A stretch of DNA of 64,000 nucleotides from Octopus bimaculoides (lineage: Eukaryota), in the NCBI RefSeq assembly GCF_001194135.2, contig NC_068988.1, forward strand, positions 29,990,139 through 30,054,138, given 5' to 3'. The translations under genes and the position numbers were made by a program. Under the pieces are notes generated by a model. That model had not been told where the DNA came from and searched no databases. It worked only from the letters and a program-made list of their open reading frames with translations. Shown one piece after another: positions 8,999 through 23,597 of the stretch (its first letter is position 1; each line of letters starts with the position of its first letter).

Positions 8999-9214
8999 TT
9001 CAACAACCAGCTAAATATTATCTTCCGATGGATGTATTTTCCAAGGGTCAGCTAGATCCGAATTCTGGACTGGACGCTACTGTTTCTGGATATCCCATCT
9101 TTGGACAGGGTGTTAAGAACAAGGCCCTGTATATTCAAAACAACCAACACATTCGAATAAATGGCCTCACTCACCGTTTCGATTGTGTCATGGACCTTGA
9201 CCTATGTCCAGCTG
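8999..9214 (+). CDS. Exon A of multi-pentraxin/LamG-like domain protein (N-half of domain 1); upstream exon(s) not identified
   Basis: Acceptor ...aatttcAG|TT at 8997-8998 and donor G|GTAAGT at 9215; 216 nt, phase 1-1. Encodes QQPAKYYLPMD...KALYIQNNQHI...FDCVMDLDLCPA and splices in frame to GYTISMW of the next exon, matching the CxxxxxxCxxGFxxSxW motif of the later domains. Confidence 0.9.
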
Positions 9215-9603
9215 GTAAGTATTATAAATACTAATATTAGAATACTTGTGTGTGTGTGTGTGCCTCTATGTATATGTATTTGGTAATTAACGCTACAAGC
9301 TTGTACCTACAAGCCAGTGACGGTCCCTGCTTGACCTGCTAGAAATAGCAACTAAATCTTTCCAATCATACCATATTGTTTTTTAAAAAATGAATCGGAG
9401 GACACTTTGAATAATGTATCCCAACATACATTGTGACTGGAAAAAAATAGATGGGATGGTCATTTTACTAAATTTTACTAAATTTTACTAAATTCTTTGT
9501 TTTATCTAAAATTAATTGAAAGAAGCACAGAGCATCTCAACAGAAATATAGTAACAAAAGAGTTAAACTTAAGAATTATTTCAACTGAAAAATGGTAACA
9601 AAA

Positions 9604-9865
9604 GGCTCTTAAACCCAAGATTCCGAGTTCGATTCCAAGCAGTGACCTGAATAACAACAACAATAATAATAATAATAACAATAATCATAACATCGAAAAA
9701 TACCTTACGAATGAGAACCCAGGTTCGAAATTTCCCCAAGACACCTGAAGAAGGCTGGAGGGTATATCAGCTGAAACGTTGTGTTAACAACAAACAAGAT
9801 GAGGACAAATATCCGTCAAATGTAAATAATGCACATGATTCCTCATCTCTTAAATATAGAACTGT
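9604..9865 (+). mobile_element. 5'-truncated tRNA-head/(AAT)n/hammerhead short retroelement (Penelope-dependent SINE-like)
   Basis: B-box-containing ccaagattccgagttcgattccaagcagtgacc nearly matches the tRNA-like head at 46137-46209. It is followed by (AAT)n, the hammerhead motif and a tail ending tatagaactgt, which is shared with the copy at 2362-2517. Confidence 0.75.
9740..9785 (+). ncRNA. Minimal type-I hammerhead ribozyme motif (best-preserved copy)
   Basis: Stem I 5' GACAC (9740-44), core CTGAAGA (9745-51), extra A, stem II GGCTG/CAGCT (9753-57/9768-72), GAAA (9773-76), palindromic stem III AACGTT with GUU triplet (9778-80), stem I 3' GTGTT (9781-85). Confidence 0.75.
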
Positions 9866-12203
9866 AAAAGGGTTAAACTTAAGAATTATTTCAACAGAAA
9901 TAAGGTAACAAAAGGGTTAAACTTCAGGATATCCTGTACATTTTTGTGACCAACACTTTTTCTTGATAACAATAACCAATTGATAACATTATCTATTACT
10001 ATAAGTGGCTTCCACTGTAAATAGATTGTCTTAATTGGTGTTCCTTGACTTTTCTTTCTGTATTTTCCTTTTTACAAGCTCATCCCTGCCTTTTCTCCAT
10101 CATCTCTCTCTTGAATACAACACAGTCTATTGCATAAACACTAACAGCCGCATATATATTTCCACATTAGCATTCTTAAATTCACCATTAAGGAAATAAA
10201 TCTTACAGTAACAGAGTGAATACTGATAACAAATTCTTCAGCCTAAAAACAGTTTCTCCTCTGGAATCCCCAAATTTTTCTCTTGGAATCCTGAAATTCC
10301 TCCCCAGGAGAGTATATTTCCAAAGGTTAAATATTATTTATTCTTCTATCTTCTGCTCTTTGACTCTAACTTATGAAAAGAATAAGAATTAGTAACATTA
10401 TTGTTGTTGCCAAATATTTTTTAAAACCCTGTGCTTGATCAAAAGTACAGCCTGAAAATACTGGTTTCAGGTTTTGGCAAAGGTCAGCAATTTTAAGGAA
10501 AGAGGGTTTAGCTGATTACATTGACCCCCAATGCTCAGCTAGTATTTATTTTATTGACCCCAAAATGATGAAAGGTAAAGTCAATCAACCTTGACAGAGT
10601 TTAAACTGAGACTGTTTATAAACAGGCTTCCACTCAGAAGAGGATAAGAAACATCTAGAAACTCTGTTATTTTAGATTGATGAATTCACTAATTTCCATG
10701 AAATTTGTTTTAAATAATGTCTGCCGAGGCAACCTGGAAGTGAAGTACTAAGTACTATCCTATATTCTGAAAGAACCCTAAGAAAGAGCCTTGAGACTTG
10801 TTGTCACCAAACCTGAAAATAAAATTCCTGCTAATTAAATCAACATGTACTAACTTGATGATAATAGCTGTTTGTAGGAAGATTGACATAGCTCTTCACA
10901 AAGGTAAATACACAATAAGAAGAGCGTAATGCGATATGGAATAAAATAGAGGTTGACTCTGTTTATTGAATCAAACAATATTTCGACAATATGTCTGCCT
11001 TCTTTGTGTTCAAAATAGGAAAATGGAAAATACACAGAAATACAGAAATTCAAAATTTCAACTGGAATTCATTGCATTCCTTCTGAGACAAAACAATATC
11101 AAGTTCCATTTGTTCATAAGTGGTTAAATCAGGGGGTGGGGAGGAGACAATAGGGAGAAGGAAAGAGAACAGTTAAAATCAAAGAGTTTTGTATAAACCT
11201 TGTGGAATTCTCTTCTTGTCATTTTGTTCATTATTCCAGGGTGTGAAACTAGTAAAACTCATAAACATGAACATAAATATAAATATATTTCTGAGTTACT
11301 AGTGTCACACCCTAGAGGGAGGAACAAAAGAACTGGAGAATTCCATTGGATTTATACAAAACCATTTTTGAATAACTGTTCTCTTTCCTCTTCTCTCTTT
11401 ATTTATTTAATTTTTTGGTATTTTGCCTTGTTTTAACCAGTTACAAATGAACAAAACTTGATGACACCCATGCTGTCTTGCAGAGAATGCAGGATAGGCC
11501 AGTTGGAATTTTTTAATTTCTTTATTTGATCCCGAAAAAAGATAGATAGATATACTGTTGAAATATAGCTCAGTTCAACAAACACAACCTATGTTTTATT
11601 ACATATCACCTTGCACTCTTTTAATTGAATAATAATAATAATGATAAGAAGAAGAAGAATGATAATGATAATAATAATAATAATGGAGGAATTTCAACCA
11701 TGTTTCGTGGTCTGCTACCACAACAGCTCCTATAAAGGATCCAGTTAGCTCAAGACATCATCAGGAGGAACCACGTCCGGTTTCGGCCCCTACTCCTCTA
11801 CCATTTTGACATGGCGGGGCTCCCCCCTTTCGGAGGTGTCTTCAGCTCTGGTGTTGAGTGCATGTCTTCTTTCTTCTGTTCCCTGGCCTCTTCGATGCAG
11901 CGTCAACGAGTGTCAGCGGCCGACTGACTGTCTTGTCAAATTTCCCTTTAAATACCTGCTGCTAAGCTCCAGCAGGCAGCCCCGGCAAGTTGTCATGTGA
12001 CACTGTCTAAACTTTAACTGACCAATGGGAGGGCGCGTAATCTTAGCCCACGCATTCTCTGACCGACACCGTCACCTGTCAATCAGCAAAGCCACTTCAG
12101 TGTCAGCCTGTCTCACCTAATGATGTTATTTTCTTGCCAGCATGTTATGACTTTTAAGCCATTTTTGGTCTTCCAAAGCTGTTATGATTTTTCATTTTTA
12201 CAG

Positions 12204-12653
12204 GTTACACAATCAGTATGTGGATGAGTTTCCGTAACCCTACATACAAAAGACAACTCTTCATGTCAAGTGGTGCCCATCTGGAAAATTCTCATGGAAT
12301 TGCCATGTACTATCGTAAAGGAGTTTTAGAATTTGTATTCCGCAACAAAGCTGGCTTAGAATGGACTGAGAAGAGTATGAACATTCTTCCTTACCATTGG
12401 TATCATGTGACAGCTACTTGGAGTAAATTACAAGGTTTAAAGCTCTACGTTAATGGAATCAACACACATTCAAAGTCCCAACCACCTAAACAGAAAAAGG
12501 CAGCTGATAGTTCCCCTAATTCACAACCAAGACATTTCTACATTGGATGTTCAGACACACAGTGTGCTAAGTTTGGCCAAGGTATCATTATCGTTGATGA
12601 GTTCCGGTTCTGGCCAAAATATGTTTCAACCAAACGAGAACTCAGACAACTAG
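12204..12653 (+). CDS. Exon B (C-half of pentraxin/LamG-like domain 1)
   Basis: Acceptor ttttacAG|GT and donor CTAG|GTAAGT at 12654; 450 nt, phase 1-1. Contains WYHVTATWSKLQGLKLYVNG and VDEFRFW, typical ConA-like LamG/pentraxin motifs. Confidence 0.93.
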
Positions 12654-22017: not shown

Positions 22018-22341
22018 GGCACGTGGCTTAGTAGTCAGGGTGTGTGACTCATTATTATGAGGTCCTAAGTTCGATACTCAACAGTGCATTCTGTCTTTAA
22101 GCAAGACATTTTTGTATCACATTGCTCCAGTCCACTCGGCTGACAAAATTGAGCTGTACCTGTAATTCAAAGGGGCTACCTTGTCACAATTCTGTGTCAC
22201 GCTGAATCTCCCTGATAACTACATTAAGGGGACATGTGGCTGTGGAAGAACCAGCCACTTGCACGCGAATTTCAGGAGCAGGCTGTTCCATTGATTGAAT
22301 CAACTGGAACCCTTATCATCATAACCAACAGAGTGCCAGTT
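22018..22341 (+). mobile_element. Family-D tRNA-derived SINE (CORE-like ttgagcaagacactt motif)
   Basis: Head ggcacgtggcttagtagtcaggg...aagttcgatactc. The body is shared with copies at ~29296, ~42195, ~46284, ~48540 and ~52437. Confidence 0.65.
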
Positions 22342-22484
22342 GGGTAATCCCAAGAATATCTCCAAAAGCAAGTCTCTTGGATTCAAAGAAAACATTTCCA
22401 AAACTTCTTTGGTCCACTAATTGAGTTGTCTCCCCTGTCACCTGCTACTCAATCACTTTGGTTAATGACACACCACTGGTAGTT

Positions 22485-22730
22485 CATCATCATCATCATC
22501 ATCGTTTAACGTCTGCCTTCCATGCTGGCATAGGTTGGACGGTTTGACTAGGGTCTGGGAAGCCAGAAGGCTGCACCAGGCTCCAGTCTGATCTGGCAGT
22601 GTTTCTACAGCTGGATTGCCCTTCCTAACGCCAACCACTCCGAGTGTAGTGGGCGCTTTTTACTTTAAACCAGCACAAGAGCCAGTAATTTGGGCCCGGC
22701 AGTGAACACATTCAGATGTTGCTTTTTACG
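22485..22730 (-). mobile_element. RTE-type 3' tail copy (intronic)
   Basis: (CAT)n-cgtttaacgtc...gcccttcctaacgccaacc. Confidence 0.75.
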
Positions 22731-22979
22731 TGTTTACACAATGCTGCTTTTAGTGAGGATTGAAACTGGAACCATCAAGTGATCTTATTTACCTGAACTA
22801 TGGCATGCACCACTCAGCCACAAAGACCATCTAAAGAACTTGCACTGTGGGTCTATCTAAATCTGGGTTTCCCTTCTCCTATTCTCTGTTTAGCAAGTTG
22901 CAGTATTTTATGTATTGTTTTTTTTTTTCAGAGAAATTATTCTTTCTTTTGTCATTTATGTTTGTATCTTTCATTACAG

Positions 22980-23597
22980 GTCGACCAACTAATTACCTCA
23001 TTGACATGGACAAAATTGATGGCAATGTACTAACCCATGATAAGCTCTACATCATGGCCGAAGGTAACCCACACCAGATCCCAGGAAGAATTGGATATGC
23101 TTTAAATTTCAACGAGAGTGGGCAGTACTTGAACTTTGGCCGACTTGACGACGTCTGTTTTGGAAACCTTGACAAATGTACGCATGGATTTTTGCTGTCC
23201 AGTTGGATGAAGTTCGGAAATTACCATAACAACATGCATTACTTTGCTTCAGGTGACGGAGGAATATCAATGTACCAAGATAACGGTTATTTACACGTAA
23301 TTTTCATTAACTCGAAAAAGAAATGGAAAATCCAAGTTCCTAACCCGGAAATGGACACTTGGCACTTTGTCGAACTTTCCTGGCATCCAGATACAGGATT
23401 AAAAATGTACATTAATAACGAGCTTGTTGGATACTCTGAAGGTGTCAACTTTGATAGAAGCCTTACAGGAAATAAGGAATTCTATATAGGAGCACCAAGT
23501 ACTGGTTATGGAGCTAACCCTAACTTTGCTATTGATGAAATGGAAATATGGTATGGCAATAGAGATAATCTGGTTGCCTTTGATTACATCAACCGAG
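22980..23597 (+). CDS. Exon E (complete pentraxin/LamG-like domain 4); downstream exon(s) not identified
   Basis: Acceptor cattacAG|GT and donor CGAG|GTAAGA at 23598; 618 nt, phase 1-1. Motifs GYALNFN, CFGNLDKCTHGFLLSSW, WHFVELSWHPDTGLKMYINN, IDEMEIW. Confidence 0.93.

Follow-up and report, generated by a model that had tools for sequence, protein, structure and literature searches.

Results

The window analysed here, a 64,000-nucleotide stretch of the Octopus bimaculoides contig NC_068988.1 (positions 29,990,139 to 30,054,138), carries five plus-strand exons that join into one frame of 2565 nt, or 855 codons with zero stops; the other two frames of the joined exons contain 37 and 71 stops. 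The exons (Table 1) were located by stop-to-stop open frames and tblastn, and their borders by splice-site analysis: each has a polypyrimidine tract and AG at one side and G/GTAAG at the other, and all five lengths are multiples of three with phase 1-1 throughout. A preliminary description of this DNA had proposed a spliced 855-codon frame, and the same coordinates and codon count were recovered here. The exons are real and spliced. Domains D2, D3 and D4 each occupy one symmetric phase-1 exon, and the remainder of the window yields no further readable domain copy. Since exon E terminates in a donor site, the gene continues downstream, and the five exons are most probably internal exons of a large gene. 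Two assembly gaps interrupt the locus. Both are intronic; the coding sequence is uninterrupted and its frame is independent of the true gap length, and no extra conserved exon was found in the orthologous introns of a gap-free cuttlefish locus (see below). Two copies of a dispersed repeat of ~170 bp adjoin the left side of the gap between exons D and E.

Table 1. Exons and assembly gaps of the LamG_3 array (window coordinates; / marks a splice junction).
Feature	Position	Strand	Length and phase	Splice sites or boundaries
Exon A, N-terminal third of domain D1 (..QQPAKYYLPMD...CVMDLDLCPAG)	8999..9214	+	216 nt, phase 1-1	acceptor tttcAG/, donor G/gtaagt
Exon B, rest of D1 (YTISMWM...WYHVTATWSKLQGLKLYVNG...VDEFRFW...RQLG)	12204..12653	+	450 nt, phase 1-1	splice sites
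Assembly gap, intron between exons B and C	13032..13233	.	intron 835 nt	between donor 12653 and acceptor 13489
Exon C, complete domain D2	13489..14118	+	630 nt, phase 1-1	splice sites
Exon D, complete domain D3	16048..16698	+	651 nt, phase 1-1	splice sites
Assembly gap, intron between exons D and E	19463..19657	.	intron 6281 nt	gap coordinates and splice sites
Exon E, complete domain D4	22980..23597	+	618 nt, phase 1-1	donor at 3' end

The product consists of four Laminin_G_3/ConA-like beta-sandwich domains of ~210 residues, D1 to D4. Pfam Laminin_G_3 recognises D1 (E = 1.5e-14) and D4 (E = 1.2e-11), D3 falls slightly below the cut-off (5e-6, 27.1 bits versus 27.6), and D2 has no Pfam match of its own; D2 scores 270 bits against our domain profile, a score that is not independent since the profile includes D2. 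The copies match one another with E values of 1e-23 to 1e-39, and the columns of C-x6-C-xxG, two Trp, GL and Asp never vary in their alignment; thus their similarity is not due to chance. In each domain a local C-x6-C pair immediately precedes the core strand G(F/Y)xxSxW. For D1, AF2 predicts a beta-sandwich (pLDDT 80, pTM 0.81), for which Foldseek retrieves lectin-like jelly rolls (E ~1e-9, TM 0.65-0.69), the trans-sialidase lectin domain and, as best structural matches, the lectin-like domain of clostridial neurotoxins (Hc-N/NTNH). The clostridial Toxin_R_bind_N family of Pfam matches the window domains weakly and the bacterial S-layer LamG_3 protein 4qvs matches at 2e-7, yet the likeness to Hc-N and bacterial LamG_3 domains is one of fold only (12-17% identity), and bacterial LamG_3 domains lack the C-x6-C motif of the window domains. 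Laminin_G_3 matches and predicted fold therefore confirm the four tandem ConA-like/LamG-type domains of the preliminary description, and all the repeat motifs that it listed are present in the domain alignment.

The "pentraxin" label that had also been attached to these domains does not hold. The Pfam Pentaxin match is insignificant (E = 0.16, 12 bits versus a cut-off of 25), the pentraxin signature H-x-C-x-S/T-W-x-S/T and the conserved long-range disulfide, as defined in PMC10687090, are absent from the window domains, and the cysteine pair is only local; true pentraxin identity was therefore rejected. Classical and long pentraxins (CRP, SAP, PTX3, neuronal pentraxins) do have the beta-sandwich superfold in common with the window domains, and the PTX3 C-terminal domain gives a weak profile match (E = 0.003).

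The top match is from the cuttlefish Acanthosepion pharaonis (Sepia below), where the exon structure is identical; this bears out the lophotrochozoan or cephalopod origin that had been suggested for the array. The gap-free Sepia locus (L001) contains the same five exons at 45-59% amino acid identity (by domain comparison, D2 44%, D3 56%, D4 59%), exon A being collinear with positions 9986-10207 at 49%. All junctions lie at identical positions and in the same phase, and every one splits a G/GN glycine codon.

Beyond cephalopods, when 1.84 billion representatives are searched with a profile, CAH1790210.1 of the annelid Owenia fusiformis ranks first (E = 8e-210). This protein has four copies (residues 246-1103) in the order seen in the window, and reciprocal best matches pair D1 with its D1 (41%), D2 with d2 and D3 with d3. 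D4 matches Owenia d4 or gastropod d1, the gastropod array domains standing at 41-44%. Outside Sepia, the best matches of D2 are Potamilus d1 and Owenia d2, and D3 is 43% identical to Potamilus d2 and 34% to Owenia d3. Clear orthologues of D1 occur only in the LNS-first Owenia proteins P0004 and P0008. The Owenia region that follows the array matches neurexin-1alpha (3qcw, E = 4.5e-153), with NRXN2 and neurexin-1 as best named matches, and is followed towards the C-terminus by a TM segment and then WD40 repeats. The gastropod protein PVD37937.1 from Pomacea canaliculata likewise combines LamG_3 copies with five stretches of Laminin_G, a TM segment and WD40 repeats, KAI3379725.1 from Seison nebaliae has the same layout, and the WD40 tails of Owenia and Pomacea are 51% identical (E = 2.6e-147). 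In Owenia and Pomacea, the array thus belongs to a large protein that spans the membrane once, through one TM segment, and combines neurexin-like LNS/EGF modules with an intracellular WD40 propeller. The copy number varies: Owenia has four, gastropods have at least six, and in Macrostomum and Seison three or four were detected; D1 to D4 and the WD40 tail occur together in one complete gene model only, that of Owenia, which is a computational prediction.

Like the Owenia relative, alpha-neurexins (neurexin-1alpha, PDB 3qcw/3r05) are multi-module, single-pass proteins of synaptic/adhesion type with the LG fold. However, canonical neurexins, Caspr and pikachurin have no WD40 tail, and with all filters off the window domain type scores at most 6.4 bits in them; the window domains are Laminin_G_3, whereas neurexin LNS domains are Laminin_G_1/2. 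No LNS, EGF, TM or WD40 exon turned up on either side of the array, over 9 kb upstream and 40 kb downstream in the window and over 10-13 kb in Sepia, and the sequence searches brought up no cephalopod PHRED-type protein.

Discussion

PHRED-1, a neurexin-like membrane protein of lophotrochozoan muscle, has received little study. The succession of LNS/EGF modules, TM segment and WD40 repeats that surrounds the array in its relatives is that of the published PHRED-1 family, described from Schmidtea mediterranea by Adler and Sanchez Alvarado, 2017, and restricted to lophotrochozoans; the homologues reported include those of Octopus, Lottia and Capitella (bioRxiv 10.1101/131789). The published protein has six Laminin G and nine EGF domains, such an array being unmentioned, and planarian 5'-RACE indicates a single transcript that spans LamG to WD40 (bioRxiv 10.1101/131789). 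The LamG_3 array recurs in the Owenia and Pomacea members of the family, where its domains correspond one by one to D1-D4, but the window does not contain the defining LNS/EGF series, TM segment and intracellular WD40 repeats. Since the window contains no 7TM, LNS or WD40 exon, we infer the gene assignment: the five exons probably belong to the cephalopod orthologue of the PHRED-1 family, linked to TM and WD40 parts. The array itself is ancient, since its positions are conserved in the annelid and, in part, in proteins of bivalves and gastropods; the suggested cephalopod elaboration is therefore not supported.

It is conceivable, though unlikely, that the array belongs to a separate gene or isoform that encodes a secreted N-terminal part and the LamG_3 domains, perhaps with one LNS, and neither TM segment nor WD40 repeats. 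Its product would be a soluble or matrix lectin-like adhesion protein. NCBI RefSeq indeed divides the Pomacea locus into three genes, in which the array product (LOC112562040, isoforms X1-X4, 740-775 residues: array, one Laminin_G and a stop of its own) stands apart from "neurexin-1b-like", and the 40 kb downstream of the array in the window, like the 13 kb downstream in Sepia, contain no PHRED-type exon. However, the "neurexin-1b-like" model begins within a LamG domain and has no signal peptide, and RefSeq separates the WD40 part too, although planarian 5'-RACE yields one LamG-to-WD40 transcript (bioRxiv 10.1101/131789), which suggests that RefSeq over-splits the locus. Moreover, the parts are joined in three independent predictions from three phyla, and the strong and conserved donor of exon E calls for at least one further exon. 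Least probable of all is that the exons are decaying pseudogene remnants that have lost expression. Although none of the annotated proteins returned by the sequence searches is from the source genome, each of the five exons is open and keeps every invariant residue, and their splice sites match Sepia in position and phase at only 45-59% protein identity, indicating long-term purifying selection.

The preliminary description had likened the domains to that of ADGRD1 (GPR133), and the first of its two options was an adhesion GPCR ectodomain with an amplified array of LamG_3/PTX-like domains. According to the literature, human ADGRD1 has one such domain. ADGRD-like adhesion GPCRs with 5-6 related copies do exist in echinoderms, one brachiopod and one nemertean: Acanthaster LOC110986089 (XP_022103402.1) and Antedon XP_071941863.1 combine 5 Laminin_G_3 stretches scored by Pfam (six copies by the domain profile) with GAIN, GPS and 7tm_2; in Lingula XP_013394840.1 and Lineus XP_064639912.1 the array numbers six copies and 5-6 TM segments are predicted at the C-terminal end, a likeness judged by eye. 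The Acanthaster GAIN and 7TM region finds ADGRD1 best among solved structures (8x9s, E = 1.7e-70), and these receptors share with the window the Laminin_G_3 family, tandem arrays and the C-x6-C-xxG...W motif, so that this part of the proposed kinship stands. Yet their domains reach only 21-69 bits against the domain profile, compared with 137-213 bits for the Owenia PHRED-type protein, are never among the top matches of D1-D4 and show no positional orthology to them, the clear D1 orthologues being confined to the two LNS-first Owenia proteins. Queries with six adhesion GPCR tails, two of them lophotrochozoan, found no GAIN, GPS or 7TM exon in the window or the Sepia locus. The receptor reading is therefore very improbable, and most likely the gene is PHRED-1-like rather than an ADGRD1-type adhesion GPCR. 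There is an equally slight chance that the exons come from the mollusc F5/8C-EGF-LamG_3-VWD-TM family (Haliotis, Ylistrum, Sinanodonta) or from another LamG_3 architecture, for example astacin/TSP1. Such families, abundant in molluscs, carry 3-5 domains of this C-x6-C LamG_3 subfamily, but these domains reach 64-101 bits with the profile and do not figure among the best matches of D1-D4. Nor was any exon resembling F5/8C or VWD noticed in passing in the window.

If the assignment to the PHRED-1 family is correct, the octopus protein would be a type I membrane protein in which a signal peptide, one LNS and a cysteine-rich/EGF-like stretch precede the LamG_3 array, and after it come a neurexin-like LNS and EGF series, a single TM helix and, inside the cell, a WD40 propeller, the array presumably being joined in cephalopods to LNS/EGF/TM/WD40 exons outside the window. 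Placed near the N-terminal end of the ectodomain, the array would be extracellular and could present a row of modules for ligand binding or adhesion. What is known of PHRED-1 function comes from one planarian RNAi study (bioRxiv 10.1101/131789). By analogy with planarian PHRED-1, the octopus protein may serve muscle cell contact and the organisation of muscle fibres.

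Results

Five symmetric exons encode a tandem array of four domains

The eukaryotic DNA of the window is rich in A+T (G+C content 37.6%) and is interrupted by 14 assembly gaps. When open frames were delimited from stop to stop and the candidate peptides were used as tblastn queries, four paralogous copies of a unit of about 210 residues were located on the forward strand (D1-D4), with no further copy elsewhere in the readable window. Splice-site inspection places them on five exons (A-E, see table), all of which have a polypyrimidine tract with an AG acceptor, a G|GTAAG donor, phase 1-1 (5/5) and a length divisible by three (5/5). 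Once joined, they form a single open frame of 2565 nt (855 codons), exactly reproducing the exon coordinates and codon count of a preliminary description of this DNA. The domains match each other with E = 1e-23 to 1e-39, and the columns invariant across their alignment are C-x6-C-xxG, two Trp, GL and an Asp.

Two assembly gaps fall into introns of the array. The frame is independent of their true lengths because it is set by the splice sites. However, since all exons are symmetric, the window alone leaves room for a hidden exon. In the cuttlefish Acanthosepion pharaonis, the orthologous locus (L001) is free of N; it contains exactly these five exons in unchanged order, and no conserved sequence lies in the introns between them. 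Since these gap-free introns hold no additional domain exon, and since the B-C intron of the octopus is only 835 nt long, it is unlikely that extra domain exons are concealed in the gaps. The cuttlefish junctions are identical to those of the window in position and phase, and every one of them interrupts a glycine codon as G|GN. That they are maintained despite a protein identity of only 45-59% provides strong evidence that the exons are real, selected and spliced. Both the acceptor of exon A and the donor of exon E are conserved; with exon A starting at the one and exon E ending at the other, the gene must continue on both sides.

Coordinates of exons, intronic gaps, repeats and low-complexity open frames in the window
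Feature	Position	Strand	Content	Basis
Exon A	8999-9214	+	D1, N-terminal part	Splice-site inspection
Exon B	12204-12653	+	D1, remainder	Splice-site inspection
Exon C	13489-14118	+	D2	Splice-site inspection
Exon D	16048-16698	+	D3	Splice-site inspection
Exon E	22980-23597	+	D4	Splice-site inspection
Assembly gap	13032-13233		Intronic, between donor 12653 and acceptor 13489	
Assembly gap	19463-19657		Intronic, between 16698 and 22980	
Dispersed repeat (~170 bp), copies 1-4	14620-14790, 19147-19243, 19296-19460, 34603-34764	both in use		
Dispersed repeat (~170 bp), copies 5-8	37963-38137, 39928-40038, 41062-41231, 46684-46846	both in use		
Dispersed repeat (~170 bp), copies 9-11	49069-49219, 56566-56732, 59363-59523	both in use		
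Long open frames	53555-54998, 55086-55390	both	Simple-sequence repeats (Gly/Ser, Val or Thr by frame)	
Open frame, 267 codons	20674-21474	-	'YLSIYLS...' repeat in D-E intron	

A repeat of about 170 bp is dispersed over the window in at least 11 copies, which share 77-89% identity with the one near 14.6 kb; two of them directly adjoin the gap between exons D and E. Its absence from the cuttlefish locus and the lack of any Rfam or tRNA match suggest a lineage-specific SINE-like element; indeed, Rfam and tRNA scans of the whole window were empty. The long open frames on both strands are low-complexity DNA rather than genes, and the minus-strand frame in the D-E intron is most likely a non-coding microsatellite or minisatellite artefact.

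The domains are ConA-like Laminin_G_3 modules

Pfam Laminin_G_3 (PF13385, gathering threshold 27.6 bits) scores D1 at 54.9 bits, D4 at 45.4 bits and D3 at 27.1 bits, just under the cut-off, with no match on D2. As D2 and D3 are evidently paralogous to D4 (E = 1e-32 and 1e-39), all four domains belong to the Laminin_G_3/ConA-like lectin-glucanase superfamily; D1 and D4 score above the Pfam threshold, and the models show the two-sheet beta-sandwich (jelly-roll) fold. The AF2 models (pLDDT 78-80) are all-beta, each domain having 13-14 strands, with D1 being predicted as a beta-sandwich with pLDDT 80 and pTM 0.81. Foldseek assigns a probability of 1.0 to lectin-like jelly rolls, the structures nearest to the D1 model being the lectin-like Hc-N domains of clostridial neurotoxins and NTNH and the lectin domain of trans-sialidase. 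A profile built from nine domain copies matched an S-layer LamG_3 protein (2e-7) and, weakly, PTX3 (0.003) and tetanus Hc-N (0.01). In a tandem D3-D4 model both domains are well folded and their junction has pLDDT <50 (pTM 0.56); as the model derives from only six sequences, it conveys nothing firm on inter-domain geometry and is no evidence for a rigid rod.

The fold class and the tandem arrangement of four LamG-type domains proposed in the preliminary description thus hold, but its 'pentraxin' label does not. The only match to Pfam Pentaxin (PF00354), on D1, is not significant (E = 0.16, 12 bits against a cut-off of 25). Pentraxins carry the signature H-x-C-x-[ST]-W-x-[ST], which none of the four domains contains. 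A long-range disulfide that links two core strands and is conserved in CRP, SAP, NP1 and ADGRG4-PTX is common to pentraxin-fold domains, those of adhesion GPCRs (aGPCRs) among them (PMC10687090). By contrast, D1-D4 have no cysteines other than the local C-x6-C pair and, in D1, a second local pair, Cys187/Cys192 (C-x4-C), and so lack this long-range disulfide. Strictly speaking, D1-D4 are thus not pentraxins but modules of the ConA-like/LamG_3 type.

The order of the domains corresponds to that in annelid and mollusc proteins

A word-indexed protein search returned only three relatives, and an exhaustive profile search 10,641. The best profile match (E = 8e-210) is the 3736-aa Owenia fusiformis protein CAH1790210.1, which consists of a signal peptide, one Laminin_G domain and a Cys-rich stretch, followed by four copies of the window-type domain (aa 246-1103), about ten Laminin_G domains along with EGF modules, one TM helix and WD40 repeats. 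The N-terminal half of an unnamed ENA protein (P0008) is organised in the same way. When all domains were excised by local HMM and compared pairwise, D1 matched D1 of the cuttlefish, of Owenia (41%) and of P0008; D2 matched the first Potamilus domain and the second of Owenia; D3 matched the second of Potamilus and the third of Owenia; and D4 matched its positional counterpart in gastropods and the fourth of Owenia. D1-D4 thus correspond in order to Owenia aa 246-1103, and D3 and D4 to the start of the Pomacea canaliculata model PVD37937.1. By this positional match with Owenia, Potamilus and gastropods, the array is older than the annelid-mollusc split. Gastropods have two extra, more divergent copies after the D4 equivalent, which makes the earlier wording of 'at least four' domains appropriate. 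The lophotrochozoan or cephalopod origin envisaged there also stands, since the best match, with identical exon structure, is the cuttlefish, followed by bivalve, gastropod and annelid proteins.

The annotated 485-aa cuttlefish protein P0001 (L001 10001-27451) lacks one half each of D1 and D2 and the greater part of D4, and has an additional C-terminus that is doubtful. It is mis-annotated, because the genome encodes all four domains intact, including the parts skipped by the model, with splice junctions as in the window. The Pomacea locus is represented in GenBank by one 2432-aa protein (PVD37937.1, P0284) and in RefSeq by three genes (P0003, P0282 and P0285), named 'LOC112562040', 'neurexin-1b-like' and 'vegetative incompatibility protein HET-E-1-like'. 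The Macrostomum model (P0302) is messy, and its C-terminus, where a flatworm array-bearing protein might have a WD40 tail, is truncated.

Discussion

To which kind of protein the array belongs can be approached through its relatives. Downstream of the array, the Owenia protein is of the neurexin family (neurexin-1alpha 3qcw, E = 4.5e-153; best named matches NRXN2 and neurexin-1). The 2432-aa Pomacea protein combines LamG_3 copies with five Laminin_G stretches, a TM helix and a WD40 propeller, and the Seison nebaliae protein is organised in the same way, apart from three Frizzled-type Fz domains inserted into its ectodomain. The WD40 tails of Owenia and Pomacea are 51% identical over 439 aa (E = 1.5e-45 against Seison), and both proteins have a juxtamembrane motif, WAFY(K/R)CKPGWC, directly after the TM helix. 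This layout is that of the PHRED-1 family. Planarian PHRED-1 is a muscle-expressed transmembrane protein of 2536 aa with Laminin G, EGF and intracellular WD40 domains, termed a divergent neurexin-1 homologue, and its homologues are confined to lophotrochozoans, including Octopus, Lottia and Capitella; a LamG_3 array is not described in that paper (bioRxiv 10.1101/131789). The octopus domains are orthologous to ectodomain modules of proteins with LNS/EGF modules, a TM helix and WD40 repeats, and their host is a lophotrochozoan. The likeness to neurexins lies only in the downstream regions of these relatives and not in D1-D4 themselves: the window domains show no LNS (Laminin_G_1/2) and EGF alternation, Laminin_G_2 reaching only E = 0.04-0.09, and canonical neurexins, Caspr and pikachurin lack the window-type domain, scoring at most 6.4 bits against its profile with filters off.

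We therefore consider it probable that the exons encode the LamG_3 array of a cephalopod PHRED-1-type neurexin-like protein, in which we infer the array to be joined to a WD40-tailed C-terminus. Neither the other 49 kb of the window nor the cuttlefish flanks showed any detectable LNS, EGF, TM or WD40 exon, and relaxed tblastn with full-length Pomacea, Owenia, Seison and P0008 queries yielded no credible exon beyond those of the array, either in the window or in L001; large introns would explain their absence. A word-indexed search with the Owenia post-array region confirmed the kinship with neurexins and returned no mollusc or cephalopod protein, and the sole matches to a chimeric Owenia query, made up of the N-terminus and the first LNS domains, were fish pikachurin and eyes-shut proteins. 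It is conceivable, if rather unlikely, that the array constitutes a separate secreted protein, as the RefSeq models of Pomacea would have it. However, the middle one of these models starts inside a LamG domain and has no signal peptide, which suggests that RefSeq over-splits the locus.

The preliminary description had also considered an adhesion GPCR of the ADGRD1/GPR133 type, and at the level of the domain this link is reasonable: the C-x6-C-xxG motif is held in common with the aGPCR LamG_3 subfamily, occurring in nearly all metazoan members irrespective of architecture, and is absent from bacterial LamG_3 repeats. Arrays likewise exist in such receptors. Pfam (GAIN, GPS, 7tm_2) confirms the Acanthaster protein LOC110986089 (P0010) and an Antedon protein (P0014) as adhesion GPCRs; each has EGF modules (EGF_CA in Acanthaster) and five Pfam-scored Laminin_G_3 stretches, or six by domain profile. 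ADGRD1, for which PDB entries comprise the GAIN/7TM part only, is the best match of the Acanthaster GAIN and 7TM region among solved structures. In proteins of Lingula (P0018) and Lineus (P0023), the array comprises six copies and 5-6 TM segments are predicted at the C-terminus, their likeness being judged by eye; these two, P0031 and P0068 were classed by eye and a crude TM count. All six are uncharacterised and carry four to six tandem C-x6-C Laminin_G_3 domains. Since vertebrate ADGRD1 is described with a single PTX-like domain, they look like multi-domain ADGRD-like receptors. Yet against the profile, aGPCR domains of echinoderm, brachiopod and nemertean origin reach 21-69 bits, compared with 137-213 bits for the PHRED-type domains of Owenia, and are never among the top matches of D1-D4. 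Moreover, tblastn with six aGPCR tails found no GAIN, GPS or 7TM exon in the 64-kb window or the 37-kb cuttlefish locus. The receptor reading is thus not borne out, and an aGPCR, another LamG_3 architecture or a pseudogene are improbable even when taken together.

A broader scenario, which we put forward tentatively, is that the C-x6-C Laminin_G_3 module is an old bilaterian exon-shuffling unit, with one domain per symmetric phase-1 exon, that was arrayed independently in two settings: in spiralian PHRED-1/neurexin-like proteins, as an undescribed four-domain array whose order has been fixed since before the annelid-mollusc split, and in ADGRD-type aGPCRs of echinoderms, brachiopods and nemerteans. 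Perhaps the cephalopod and gastropod array might also be released as a secreted isoform.

Nothing here is surprising enough to alter current views. The new point is a modest one, namely the previously undescribed conserved array itself, in a family that is known but poorly studied. In the single planarian study of its function, PHRED-1 was needed for ordered muscle fibres in regeneration, knock-down leaving fibres thickened and disorganised and disturbing regeneration of the pharynx and gut (bioRxiv 10.1101/131789). If the PHRED-1 assignment is right, a cephalopod gene can be placed in this family and the conserved four-domain LamG_3 array would be part of the family's ectodomain, providing a concrete module for ligand tests and a marker with which to mend fragmented annotations such as those of the cuttlefish and Pomacea. 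As the same domain type is arrayed in ADGRD-like receptors, it also bears on how the ectodomains of adhesion receptors are assembled.
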